Origin: Dicyema japonicum
Taxonomy: Eukaryota; Animalia; Dicyemida
Length of the DNA: 64,000 nt
Assembly: GCA_011109175.1 (NCBI GenBank)
Contig: RDEW01000035.1
Coordinates: forward strand, 263,564-327,563
Direction: 5' to 3'
Position 1 is the stretch's first letter, and each line of letters begins with the position of its first letter. The notes beneath the pieces are model-generated. The model worked only from the letters and a program-made list of their open reading frames with translations. It was not told where the DNA came from and did no database searches. The position numbers and the translations under genes are program-made. This document shows positions 1,823 through 11,617 of this stretch, piece after piece.

Positions 1823-2894
1823 ACAAAAAATATTTCAACTAAACTTTTTTTAGAAATAACTTAATTCTATCGCTTTCAAAATCAATTTTTGTAATTACAG
1901 TCTTTAATATCATTAGAATAGCTCATCTACACTTAAAGTTAACAATTTACGTTGTGAAGATTTTTGTAACTGAGATATTCCCACTTAATATAGCCTTGAG
2001 TATATTTTCGGAGACAAATACCAATTTTGAGAATATGGATCATTTGACAAAATAATTTTCGATTTTTTTTCATTTTTAATTTTTTTAAAAGAAAAATTTT
2101 TTTAACAATTAAATTTTCGATTTTTACCAATTTGAATAAATATTTCTTACTCAAAAATAATTATTAGATTAATGGACATACTTTTTGTTCGATTTGGAAA
2201 GTATGGAGAGTATCAAAACTACGACATGTAACTCTAAAATGTAATCTCCCTATTCAAGTATGTTTTCCACCTTCATTATAATAAATTATTATAAATATCT
2301 ATACAATAGAAAGTAATATTATAAACCAGGTCATTGCCCTCATTGGAAATTTATCATTCAAAACAGTTGAAAAAAAAAAAATAATGGAAAAACAAACAGT
2401 ATAACTGAATTGAAGCAACGTGGTTAACCCGATAAATACGTTTGTGGGCACGAGTAGTGTCGTGGTGCCTATTTAATAGCAGAAGTCTTCCAATATTGTA
2501 GAATATAAGAAACAGTCTTACCTATTATAATAAAGACAAAAAACCCCATTTTAGACTTAAACTCCAGTACTACTTTTCCAGTAACTCTAGAGACGTCGAT
2601 GGCGGGCCTTTCTTTGGAAATTTTTATACGGGCACCATCTCAGAATTTGTCGCAAAAAAGCACACACACATATAGATAAATGGTAAGACATACAGTTTAT
2701 TTCCGGCACTCCATAGCTTTTCAGAAAGTTTTTCTTGATGATTACGCTTTTGAAGTAGTGAAAAAATCACATGTGCACGTTAAAGGTGATACCCAGAATT
2801 TTCTGTTTGCAAGCTAAATGGAATTTTGATATTATCCATTTTAAGCTTCATCATTTGTCGCCTAATGCAGTGTTCTCAACGAGGGGCGATTCGA

Positions 2895-3235
2895 ATTTTA
2901 CTTGTCAGGAAATGACCAGATGGGATGAACATCTTCCCCTTTAAAGCCGGGAAACCTCTTGTCTGGGAAGTCACCTTCAACGACACGTTTGCCCCTTGCA
3001 ACCTCTACAGACTGCCTCTTAAACGGGCGGTCCTACCCTATGATTTTTTGTTTGTTCCACTAGCCATTGAGATGTCTAATTACTTTACGCTTGCAAAGAT
3101 GAAATTCTTGAATCGTCTAAGGAATCAGATTTCTACACAATCAGGAGATCCCCGTGAGCGCTGCTTAATATTTGAGTGAATCTCGCTCGCCATCATAAAA
3201 GGGAATAGCCACAAAGTCAAGGCTGTATGATTATT
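2895..3235 (+). mobile_element. CRE-like non-LTR retrotransposon, RLE C-terminal fragment
   Basis: K*PDGMNIFPFKAGKPLVWEVTFNDTFAP ... SGDPRERCLIFE*ISLAIIKGNS. Confidence 0.85.
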
Positions 3236-3372
3236 TGATCACTTTTTCTGTAATAAATTGTTAATATTTATTAAAAATAATTAAAAATATATTTTTTATG
3301 ACAAAAATATTTCAGTGTCAAATTATCGGTTAACCATAAATTAAATAAATTGTTATTCATTTATAGGTCATA

Positions 3373-3847
3373 ATGGTTTGGATTTGATATATTTATTTAG
3401 ATTTTCCTACTTTTTTCATCTCTCATTCTTTCAAATAATCCAATCGACTTGGAAATTTATTTTGGCAACAATGATGAACTCAACGGCTACAAGAAGGAAT
3501 CTTTTCCTGTTGATAATCAAATTATTGCAATTGAAAATGACAAAATATTTAACCCTGATGTTCTCAGACAATCAAAGGTGAAACAAGAATTCCACAAGGC
3601 CGTGTTATGGGTAATCTTGTTAAATCAAAGTTTAGTACGCAAAGAACAACTTTTACATAACATTTTTCATAGGGATCGGACATGTTCTAGTTCTAGTGGC
3701 CTCTTTAATTTCTTATGCTGCAAAATTCAGTAGATGGGTTGGTTTACGTTCGATATTTTAGCTATCAAGGAAAAACAAGACAGAAGACTGCGAAGAAATA
3801 AATGTATTGGGTTTGTTCAATTTTAGTTTATTGAGAAAGATATTTAA
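3373..3847 (+). CDS. Intact 125-aa predicted type I membrane protein; 5 exons join(3373-3375,3401-3610,3636-3737,3762-3803,3827-3847)
   Basis: Four phase-0 GT..TTAG introns of 25, 25, 24 and 23 nt. The spliced product has a signal-like N-terminus MIFLLFSSLILS, a TM segment FYITFFIGIGHVLVLVASLISYAA, a basic stop-transfer stretch and a TAA stop. Confidence 0.75.
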
Positions 3848-4379
3848 TTAGTTCATGGTGTCACAGTTTTTGTTATGGGTTTTGCCTAATTTTTGTCTAA
3901 TCGTGTAGTATTAAGTAGCTAACCGATCCTAAAAGTGTTCTGATTTGCTACTAAGCTAATATTTAGATTTGCTTCCATTTTCAAATCGGACTTTTATTCA
4001 ATAAATGATGTTTGTGAATTTTTCTGAGAGACTCAACACCTATTTTATCTGAAATTATTTATTTAGAGGGTAGAAACATGATTCCGTTGTTTTAACTAAT
4101 ACTCTATCTATGGCTCCGCAAACAGAATGTAGACTTCTCGAACAGTTAAGAGCCTGAAAGTGTAATCCAAGTCAATTCTCTCCAAAAATTATTTTTGTTT
4201 AACTACAATCTCTGTTTACTTGCAAGTAAGAGAAGTAATCTTTAAGTAATAAGCAGTTGACATATTTGTCATCAATATTAATAAAATAATAAAGAAAGTG
4301 CTCATTGATGGAATAAATTAACTGAATTCAACTTTGTCTTAGAAAGTTCACTTATTATTCTATTAACATTAAATTGTGG

Positions 4380-4572
4380 AAACCCCTCCTGCGGAGTGGG
4401 GGTGAGCAAATGATCCTTTTTCGTTCCGGCCTGGCACTTCGCCACCTGCAAATATGGACGTCTTTTACCCTTTATGTTGATTCCGGATAGACTCTTTTTG
4501 TGGAAGTGGAAACTGGATACACTTAATTAGTTGTTTACTTTAACTTCTTTCTCGGTGTATCCGGGGTTATCA
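4380..4572 (+). mobile_element. SINE family 2, 5'-truncated copy with inverted core module plus LINE-like tail
   Basis: 4380-4450 matches 53246-53320 in the same orientation, while 4460-4570 matches 53112-53232 as reverse complement. Confidence 0.55.
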
Positions 4573-4759
4573 TTTTATTTTTTATTAACATTAAATTATA
4601 TTAGTTAGTTAGATAAGTGACCCCAGTCTCACGAACTTGTAGGAGACCAACGGCTATTAAGTAAGACGCATCGTAGACGTATGTCCCTCGGGAAAGAGGA
4701 TTCCGATTGATCTGTCGATAGAGGAACCGGCTTAGTGTCAAAATGCGACTGAAAAACGC

Positions 4760-5900
4760 TGGTAACTTTGACGACAAAAATAACTTGTGGATCACCAGAT
4801 GATTTGCGCCCAATCACGTACATGTCTATATTATATAAATTACTCACTGTTAATTCCAATCTTACTGATTATTTGAAAACATTCGATCTCGTCTCTGACA
4901 ATCAGATGGGAGCGAAGAGGTGGTATCAAGGCGCCAAAGTGGTCTGTATCAACCAGTGTATAAACAATAAATATGAGAATAATTTTATTTGCAACTTGGA
5001 TCGACCTTAGGTAAGTATATGATTCAGTCGACCATGATTTTCTGTGTCATGTATTGGAATGTTCGGGACTTCCAAATTAAATAAGAAATTTCGTGAAGAG
5101 TTTAACTACCAAATGGAGAGTACTAAACTTAAACATGAAGAGGATTGGGACAGTTGTATCGAAACGTGGAATACTCCCCGAGACTATGTCTCCCCAACTT
5201 TTAGTTTCAGTCATGGATCCTTAAGCATAATTCTAAATAATAAATTTCCAAAATTGTCTATATCCCAAAGTTATTCATAATTGATGCCGCATACAACCAA
5301 TCACTTACTTTTTATTGATGATATAAAAATATTTACTGAGAAGGCAGATATAACGGTGAAGATAATAAATGAAATTGATGAGCATTTCAATGTGGTTGGG
5401 ATTAAGAAGAGTTTTGAGAAGACTGCCACTAATCTGGAATGTATGAAAGATGCAAAACCTCTGGATGGACATGAAGGCTATCAATACCTCGGATTGTTAG
5501 AGATCGTACAAGCAACATCATGAAGCATAATGTTTTGAGAACAATCGTGGAAAACGTAAAGAAGATTGTGAGATTGATGCATACTAAACTCAATACTACA
5601 AACCTATTTAAAGCGAACGTCTGGGTTGTGTCCTTTCTATTTGTCTTGACTGATTATCGCGTAAGGCTCTCCAGTCAAAGTCATACCTATTGTTCTAACT
5701 TGGGACGGAGTAGTTTCTAAGGCTCATGAATCTCACTTGAAAGCCATCGCAATAGATGCGCCGACCAGAACATACATCTAATCCGTGGTCCTTTAAAAAG
5801 ACGTTGGAGAGCATGTTAGTGGAATATAAGTACGGGTGCACAATTTCGAAGAAGAGTTGGTTACTGGTGGAGTTGACAGTTTAGTCTTGAGTAAGGTGGA
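4760..5900 (+). mobile_element. R4-like non-LTR retrotransposon RT region, degraded
   Basis: GSPDDLRPITYMSILYKLLT, NQMGAKRWYQGAK, TNHLLFIDDIKIF and GYQYLGLLE, interrupted by stops and frameshifts. Confidence 0.85.
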
Positions 5901-6039
5901 AACAGGTAGAATTCAGGTTACCTATTCCTCCTCTAAGAGGAGAGGGTTTCGAAGCGAGTAGTAATTTTCGATTTAATTGTGTTTTCCGTAAAAATAAATC
6001 TCCTTTTTGTCGAAACGATTATTGATCAGAAACCAAATA

Positions 6040-6083
6040 CAGTCGACCTTCGCAAATTGGCCAATCTTTAAATTGGCCACAGT
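6040..6083 (+). mobile_element. Solo pogo/Tigger-like terminus
   Basis: TA|CAGTCGACCTTCGCAAATTGGCCA followed by a repeated AAATTGGCCA; no partner end found. Confidence 0.3.
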
Positions 6084-6169
6084 TTTTAAATTAATTTTTA
6101 ATACAAAAAATTTTATTAACACATCGAATGCTACTCGTAGGCTCGCCTACTTTTAATGAAAAAACTCAA

Positions 6170-6500
6170 ATTAGTTTGTTAGTTAATGCACGTCCGCGTT
6201 GCTAGTAAACAGTGTTTATGGTTTCGCTTGTGCCATGTTTTTAACTATTCTTGCCGTTAGCCTTCTCCATCCCTTTCGTCTTGCTCGCCTCCTGATTTCG
6301 TCCAGATCGTCTGCACCCATCAAACGGCCTTCGATCACAGCATAATCATCTGCAAGTGTCCTGGGAAGACAAACTCTTGGACGTCCTCAGAGTGTAGAAA
6401 ATTCAGTATTCCCGAGAAATTCTTCCATGGGGCATTGCAGGGTGTGTCTTTAATGATCGCGACAATCTTCAGTGAGACGCCTTCATGCTTTAAATTAATA
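6170..6500 (-). mobile_element. RTE-clade LINE 3' fragment
   Basis: GRPRVCLPRTLADDY..MGADDLDEIRRRA and GWRRLTARIV, like the other RTE ends in the window. Confidence 0.6.
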
Positions 6501-6729
6501 TCAAAGATAATAATCAAATAGCGACCCAGTTAAATTATTGACAATAAGGAAGTGGTCAATTTATCTTGCAATCTCTTCTTCCATACGAAACATTATTTTC
6601 TTTTCTTTTACAAGGTAGAACATTTTTCTTTCTCTTTTAACTCAGTGGTCCTAAACCAATAATAATGATAACTTTGATTAAAAATTAATTATACAAAACA
6701 AAATAAATTTAAATAAAATTGGAACAAAA

Positions 6730-6970
6730 TACCACAAGGGTTATCTGAAGCAGTTGGTGGTAGATAGGAAGCTCCAGGCCTATCTACAGTCCACTGTGTT
6801 AAAGCGGATCCTAGAGAGCCTGACACTGGAGTATAGGAGGCAGAGCCCTGAGATGCCATATGGGCAGAGGGTTCAATTAGACAAGGAGCCCTAGGAATTG
6901 TTTCAGCAACCAGAATCGAACTTGCCTGAGGACTGGCGAACAGGCAGGCGAGGAAGGTTGTTGATTATTA
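6730..6970 (+). mobile_element. R4-like element 3' end
   Basis: HKGYLKQLVVDRKLQAYLQSTVLKRILESLTLEYRR, homologous to the 24.2 kb fragment. Confidence 0.7.
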
Positions 6971-7030
6971 AATATATTCATTTTTTTATTGTTTGTTAAA
7001 TAAAGTGGGATTATATTTATATTATAGAAC

Positions 7031-10559: not shown

Positions 10560-11617
10560 AACAATTGCAGTGAGATGTTCCAATTACTAGGTTTATAAAG
10601 TAAATTAAAAATAGGAAAATATACGTGTTTAGCAAGCAATAAATTATTGGGGAGGAATATTACTACTTTTGAAATGTTGTATAATAATGTAACTATGTGG
10701 GGTGCGACAAAGAACAACCACGTCGTAACGTTATTTAGTGGAACAATTGAAGTTGAATATAAATTGAAATACAGTAAATACATTAAATTAAATAAAAGAT
10801 GAAATATGAAAATTTAAATGACGCAATTTTTGATTTTTATTTACGTGAACATTTTGGTGCGCTTAAGTGGATGAAAAATGATATAAAATTCACATTACTA
10901 TTTTCCCGTATATCAAATTATATACATGTATGGGGATTAGAATTGAATTCTTTCATGGACTTATGTACACTACAATCCGAATTTCGACTAACGGCTATTA
11001 TAACTGCAGTGAACTAGTTATAACTATTCCTAATTATGGAACTATAAAAATAAAAGATATGAAAATGCAGCTATCAAAAACAGATAATAACACTAGGTTT
11101 ACTGGAAATGGTAACTTTATTAACCGACATTTAGCACTCGGATGTGATTTCAGAAAAAAAAAGAAAAAATATTTTAATATAATAATGACAAATACAACTC
11201 GAAGTTATACAACAACTCATCGTACTCTAAAAACAATAAAGTCTCATGCAATCAGTAATATTAATTTAAATTTAGAAAACAAATATATATTATCAATTTG
11301 TGTAATTGGTGTAATTATTGTTGCCATTGTTATCACTTACTTAATAAAATATAAAAGAAGAAGACGTTTTTTTCATTACAGATTGGGATTTTCAATTATT
11401 AATATTATTTTATATTAGATTATAATAATGACTTACAAATTTATTTTCGTTAATATTTAGTTCATAATTTAAGAAACTTGGACGCCTGGCTAAACTAAAA
11501 AGCCACGACGCACATGAAACCCGATAGCTTCTCCAGTTGATCACTATTACACTCAATCCCATAAATGTTGACCCAATTCCCATAAATGATGACCCAATTC
11601 GCATAAATGATGTCTAA
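10560..11617 (+). pseudogene. Host type I membrane protein gene with frameshifts; Ig-like motif and tentative LAMP-like domain
   Basis: A 24-nt intron (10591-10614) creates GKYTCLASNKLLG. TM segment YILSICVIGVIIVAIVITYLI is followed by KYKRRRR. Candidate 25-nt introns at 10774-10798 and 11449-11473. Confidence 0.45.
11558..11617 (+). repeat. 21-bp tandem repeat, about 3 copies
   Basis: Unit CCCATAAATGWTGACCCAATT; reads PINVDPI PINDDPI RINDV* on the + strand. Confidence 0.85.

Follow-up and report, generated by a model that had tools for sequence, protein, structure and literature searches.

A candidate micro-intron gene for a small membrane protein beside a LINE 3' end in the dicyemid Dicyema japonicum

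Four short GT..TTAG segments can be removed from a 475-base stretch of Dicyema japonicum DNA (3373-3847, + strand; C279:266,936-267,410 in the assembly) to leave an open frame of 125 codons without an internal stop. This raises the question of whether the locus is a gene interrupted by very small introns or a frame that happens to be spliceable in non-coding DNA. All positions refer to the window, that is, the whole 64-kb stretch of DNA analysed here, unless a contig is named. The published assembly of this species comprises 67.5 Mb in 377 scaffolds, with 49% repeats, 5,012 genes and a mean intron length of 38 bp (Lu et al. 2019, PMC6736024); the assembly that we analysed holds 67,542,437 bases in 377 contigs. 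According to Hadjez et al. (2026, PMC13644364), D. japonicum has introns of less than 30 bp whose splice signals are pared down to 'GTa' and 'AG', and micro-introns as such are therefore already published and not new. We consider it probable, at roughly 0.65, that 3373-3847 is a real, spliced, lineage-specific nuclear gene for a small type-I membrane protein, whose transcription, splicing, targeting, topology and function we infer from its sequence.

Neither tRNA genes nor Rfam matches were found in the window, and long ORFs are nearly absent; bacterial readings of it were rejected on these grounds and because the DNA belongs to an animal genome. The unit that carries the candidate frame directly follows the 3' end of a LINE fragment (2153 to ~3290) and is itself followed by a SINE-like insertion of ~200 nt (4376-4574) and then by further LINE pieces (4575-6450). 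The two sets of LINE fragments, 2153-3290 and 4575-6450, lie on the same strand and bracket the candidate; they include a piece of the ORF2 C-terminus at 2925-3179 and, judged by eye, a reverse-transcriptase-like ORF at 4768-5010.

The proposed exons have coding lengths of 3, 210, 102, 42 and 21 nt, which places every junction in phase 0 (Table 1). The start codon has an A at -3 and a G at +4. The model cannot do without intron 1: exon 2 contains no in-frame ATG, and its frame becomes open immediately downstream of the acceptor TAG. The first-pass annotation had described an ATG followed directly by a 25-nt intron and four phase-0 GT..TTAG introns of 23-25 nt, and the sequence of 3373-3847 agrees with that description; translation likewise confirms its claim of a 125-residue spliced product free of stops and frameshifts. 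It had also held that ORF callers split the gene into two overlapping ORFs, and a prokaryote-style listing of the region does give two, at 3378-3581 and 3449-3733. The claim of four introns stands insofar as all four are present as GT..TTAG segments, but the fourth is dispensable: reading through it also leaves an open frame, of 134 codons, that ends at a TAG at 3849-3851. Moreover, 3,652 alternative GT..AG splice paths start from the ATG at 3373, such that the 125-codon model is not unique.

Table 1 Features of the proposed gene model and its flanks, in window coordinates.
Feature	Position	Strand	Description
Putative promoter and 5' UTR	3251..3372	+	Conserved in copy L002; overlaps the A/T-rich 3' end of the LINE fragment (~3288)
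Exon 1, coding part	3373..3375	+	Start codon alone
Intron 1	3376..3400	+	25 nt, GTT..TTAG, phase 0, directly after the ATG
Exon 2	3401..3610	+	70 codons: hydrophobic N-terminal segment, then acidic, Asn-rich, Cys-free putative outer segment
Intron 2	3611..3635	+	25 nt, GTA..TTAG, phase 0
Exon 3	3636..3737	+	34 codons: juxtamembrane stretch, predicted transmembrane helix, basic stop-transfer stretch
Intron 3	3738..3761	+	24 nt, GTT..TTAG, phase 0
Exon 4	3762..3803	+	14 codons, putative cytoplasmic tail
Intron 4	3804..3826	+	23 nt, GTA..TTAG, phase 0, optional
Exon 5, coding part	3827..3847	+	6 codons and TAA at 3845-3847
Putative 3' UTR	3848..4005	+	AATAAA at 4000-4005, a motif frequent by chance in AT-rich DNA

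That the removed segments are introns, as the first-pass annotation proposed, is supported by their form, which matches both the introns of D. japonicum actin and kinase genes and the published class of 20-30 nt (PMC6736024, PMC13644364); their removal from a transcript would be expected. The actin gene of this species has introns of 27 and 22 nt, and 33 in-frame introns that we recovered from kinase and actin loci have lengths that peak at 21-27 nt, with a mode of 24 nt. Among these 33, 13 end in TTAG and 17 start with GTT. A TTAG end is found in only 8.6% of all GT..AG 21-27-mers of the window, which corresponds to a 4.5-fold enrichment per intron in real introns; all four candidate introns have it. 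The candidate thus shares intron lengths, a minimal GT..AG, a frequent TTAG end and short exons with the micro-intron genes already described for this species (PMC6736024, PMC13644364), but those genes are backed by transcripts and mostly have homologues, whereas the candidate is known from sequence alone and has none.

To obtain a chance expectation, ATG-to-stop paths were threaded through third-order Markov shuffles of the window, and models of at least 125 codons were counted. When any GT..AG segment of 22-27 nt could serve as an intron, with up to four introns per model, 5.5 chance loci arose per strand; when any GT..AG segment of 21-27 nt was allowed and at least three introns had to be needed, there were 3.8 chance models per strand. 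As such lax models are common, the fact that a frame can be built with bare GT..AG introns means nothing. With at least three introns still needed, the expectation was 0.125 chance models per strand for GT..TAG ends, and GT..TTAG ends in any phase produced no model in 40 strand-windows. Under the form seen in the candidate (23-25 nt, TTAG, phase 0), 150 strand-windows gave 44 models; 42 of these were intronless ORFs, and no model required a second intron. The real window contains a single model that depends on TTAG introns of this sort, namely the candidate. The candidate therefore exceeds chance for TTAG-ended introns, not for lax GT..AG introns.

The topology of the predicted protein was judged by Kyte-Doolittle hydropathy of the joined product. 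Its N-terminus is hydrophobic at residues 2-12 (up to 2.82 in a 10-residue window), and a single strongly hydrophobic segment follows at about residues 77-100 (19-residue window up to 2.27, at residues 79-97). Between them lies a stretch of ~60 residues that is acidic, Asn-rich and Cys-free, and the second segment is followed by five K/R within 11 residues and then by a short acidic end. By hydropathy alone this is a type-I pattern: a hydrophobic core at the N-terminus, a single helix further on, and positive charges on the putative cytoplasmic side. None of 140 lax chance models combined a hydrophobic N-terminus with a membrane helix further on, and 1 of 44 strict ones did. The N-terminal hydrophobic segment derives from a pyrimidine tract of 33 nt that reads as hydrophobic whatever the frame. 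For exon 2 alone, a single-sequence AF2 model had a mean pLDDT of 58.9, with helices only at the two ends and no confident fold. The order of signal peptide, ectodomain, transmembrane helix and tail proposed in the first-pass annotation is thus recovered by hydropathy, while cleavage of a signal peptide and a location at the cell surface would go further than the order of features does. Compared with generic small type-I single-pass proteins, the candidate shares the order of hydrophobic N-terminus, helix of 22-24 residues and K/R-rich stretch (the positive-inside rule); unlike them, it lacks a family signature, its outer part is free of cysteines and N-X-S/T sites, and no fold is predicted for exon 2. 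A further frame in the window, at 10930-11418 (+), is an intronless ORF of 162 codons with a membrane-helix-like segment and weak, sub-threshold Pfam matches to RIFIN and TMEM154.

If the model is right, an mRNA would start a little upstream of 3373, and the spliceosome would remove the GT..TTAG introns of 25, 25 and 24 nt and perhaps the one of 23 nt. The product of ~125 residues would enter the ER by way of its hydrophobic N-terminus and end as a single-pass type-I membrane protein, with an acidic outer segment of ~60 residues that is probably unfolded, one helix, and a cytoplasmic tail of 25 residues that is first basic and then acidic. The protein may reside at the cell surface rather than in an inner membrane, its signal peptide may be cleaved, and intron 4 may be used.

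The unit is present three times in the genome, as the window copy and as two damaged copies on one other contig (C1). The first of these, L002 (C1:2,155,681-2,156,424), matches window 3251-3995 at 94%; the second, L003 (C1:2,150,272-2,151,116), matches window 3524-4375 at 93% and is without the 5' half. Identity between copies of the unit is thus 93-94%, compared to 75-87% in the colinear flanks. The C1 region is colinear with window 2153-6450, which indicates a DNA-level segmental duplication. L002 is preceded by the same LINE 3' end, interrupted there by another SINE-like copy (~5504-5682 of L011) that is flanked by a duplication of ~22 nt corresponding to window 3251-3273; the SINE-like element at 4376-4574 of the window is in turn absent from the colinear C1 copy. 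Because the two C1 copies share nearly all of their differences from the window copy, they amount to essentially one independent comparison. Homopolymer frameshifts in both C1 copies imply that, under the gene model, both are pseudogenes and the window copy is the sole intact one.

Purifying selection on the frame had been set as a test of the gene model, and the outcome is mixed: synonymous changes are in excess and indels are few, but substitutions are as dense in the coding part as in the flanks. Of the 13 coding substitutions against the C1 copies, 8 are synonymous and 5 are replacements in the proposed frame, compared to 2 and 11 in each other frame; 8 of the 13 fall at codon position 3. 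A type-matched simulation expects 4.26 synonymous changes, giving P(>=8) = 0.024 for these 13 substitutions and this one independent comparison, and the NG86 estimates from the same small sample are dS 0.115, dN 0.017 and omega 0.15. Most of this signal comes from the helix exon. There, five of six substitutions are at codon position 3 (four synonymous and one I>M) and the sixth, L>I, is at position 1; exon 2 carries two synonymous and three replacement changes, and exon 4 a single synonymous one, CTA>TTA. From exon 2 to exon 3 the position-3 substitutions change phase by +1, the offset expected of a 25-nt intron, and the shift downstream also matches introns of 24 and 23 nt. Although the introns carry five substitutions, both C1 copies retain GT and AG; three of the five lie in intron 3, while the sequence of intron 1 is identical in L002. 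Over ~800 aligned nt each, the gene body shows three indel events and the flanks 14 (P = 0.006), and all three in the gene body are homopolymer frameshifts, each private to one C1 copy.

The coding part is not, however, a peak of conservation. It diverges by 3.2-4.4%, and the corresponding values are 5.2% for the introns, 4.1-4.4% for the 3' flank and 7.4% for the 5' flank; the upstream flank at 3251..3372 differs from L002 by nine substitutions and four indel events in 122 nt, and the 3' UTR candidate at 3848..4005 is conserved in the C1 copies at the level of the coding part. The well-conserved island spans 3251-4375, well beyond the frame, and judging from the sequence comparison it resembles a younger or gene-converted segment more than the outcome of protein-level constraint. 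In the flank at 3848-4375, 23 substitutions fall 14/6/3 by coordinate mod 3 even though there is no open frame; such a bias in a stop-riddled flank indicates that small-sample periodicity of this size can arise by chance. This flank is as conserved as the coding part (~95.6%, counting substitutions only), and gene conversion or a younger duplication is possible. A second gene within it was considered and rejected, as all six frames are full of stops and show no convincing synonymous excess.

Base composition and codon usage are close to those of the surrounding DNA. The coding GC of the candidate, 32.5%, equals the background (the window has ~33%), compared to 41.9% in known exons. The codon log-likelihood is best in the proposed frame, at -0.025 per codon against -0.16 and -0.25 in the other two; this score lies in the top 4% of chance models (mean -0.106, sd 0.048) and in the low tail of real exons (-0.08 to +0.22). 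A score based on synonymous codon choice only had no discriminating power.

Searches for relatives used exon 2 (70 residues) and exon 3 as separate queries. Neither exon had a Pfam match at E <= 10. For exon 2, no relative was found in word-indexed protein searches, one of which used a longer unspliced reference that admitted products of 60-192 residues, or in a full scan of 1.84 billion representative proteins, and the ESM Atlas gave no usable match and a low recognition as a natural protein. Within the D. japonicum genome, exon 2 and the unit showed no similarity beyond the three copies, and a sequence-only profile of these copies found no further diverged ones. The label 'lineage-specific' in the first-pass annotation is consistent with these results for exon queries against Pfam, the word-indexed collections and the 1.84 billion representatives. 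As a control, an exon of D. japonicum casein kinase had no identical protein in the 1.84-billion collection; D. japonicum products are thus absent from that collection, and the blanks obtained there are silent on annotation or expression.

We favor a real gene because introns with the typical TTAG end were never reproduced by chance, because the membrane features come in a coherent order, and because the pre-specified frame is rich in synonymous changes and poor in indels. The same observations bear on the contrary proposal, namely that a chance spliceable frame lies in non-coding DNA within a recent segmental duplication that adjoins a LINE 3' end. Lax introns would readily supply such a frame, given 5.5 models per strand, 3.8 of the kind that needs at least three introns, and thousands of paths from this ATG; the coding part is no better conserved than its flanks within an island that far exceeds it, the non-coding flank has a comparable mod-3 bias, and the frame has background GC, no relatives and, for exon 2, no confident fold. 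Chance does not, however, readily account for introns that all end in the 4.5-fold enriched TTAG, a form absent from models of this kind in the shuffles, nor for a split of 8 to 5 in the frame specified beforehand when the others give 2 to 11, the scarcity of gene-body indels and the orderly succession of N-terminal segment, helix and basic tail. On balance we regard a chance frame as rather unlikely, though a serious competitor.

Two further scenarios accept part of this evidence and differ in what they make of it. The locus might be transcribed and spliced now, or have been recently, with no maintained function, either as a proto-gene arising de novo from LINE-flanking DNA or as the last intact member of a decaying family. 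Homopolymer frameshifts and a truncation have damaged two of the three copies, there are only three copies in 67.5 Mb, composition is that of the background, and exon 2 is poorly recognised as a natural protein and folds poorly, all of which would suit a young or dying gene; yet the omega of 0.15, together with the absence of indels on the branch that joins the window copy to the C1 ancestor, speaks for constraint in the past, in a sample too small to date it, and we consider this scenario improbable. Still more improbable, to the point of being nearly negligible, is that the 745-1,100-bp unit merely travels with the LINE, as a 3' transduction or part of a composite element, with the frame irrelevant. 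In the window and in L002 alike, the unit does come immediately after the 3' end of a LINE from one and the same family, and its identity between copies exceeds that of the colinear flanks; however, its copies number only three, neither a poly(A) tail nor a target-site duplication was seen around it (L002 inspected), the colinearity of C1 and window over 4 kb fits a DNA-level segmental duplication, and being carried along would in any case be compatible with coding.

Should the real-gene reading hold, it would add one more small lineage-specific membrane protein of a parasite of octopus kidneys whose host-facing proteins are almost unknown, and standard gene callers, along with the count of 5,012 genes, may miss short genes of this micro-intron kind. 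Since micro-introns have been published and the protein offers no functional hint, a single such gene changes no picture. A more far-reaching version, which we find doubtful, is that the frame arose de novo within dicyemids from DNA next to a LINE 3' end, with one copy selected to stay open while two duplicates decay; it is suggested by the background composition and by the lack of a fold and of relatives. If it were true, a genome with near-signal-free introns of 24 nt could quickly recruit introns and a membrane-protein frame from junk DNA. For work on the D. japonicum genome, the analysis offers a calibrated warning: that a region can be opened by splicing is uninformative with bare GT..AG ends and informative with typical TTAG ends.

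Two minor observations were made along the way. A repeat of ~300 nt at window 6717-7025 has more than 40 copies at 93-95% identity on many contigs and is probably a young SINE-like family. The best matches of the D. japonicum casein kinase I exon (L043, G000:C146:410826-411593) are four entries named 'casein kinase I-like [Octopus sinensis]' (P0001, P0004, P0006 and P0016), which are 77, 70, 69 and 66% identical to it and come from scaffolds of 0.46-1.03 Mb; three of the four (77-69%) are closer to it than any other animal CK1 (68% at most), and these scaffolds may be dicyemid-derived sequence in the octopus assembly.
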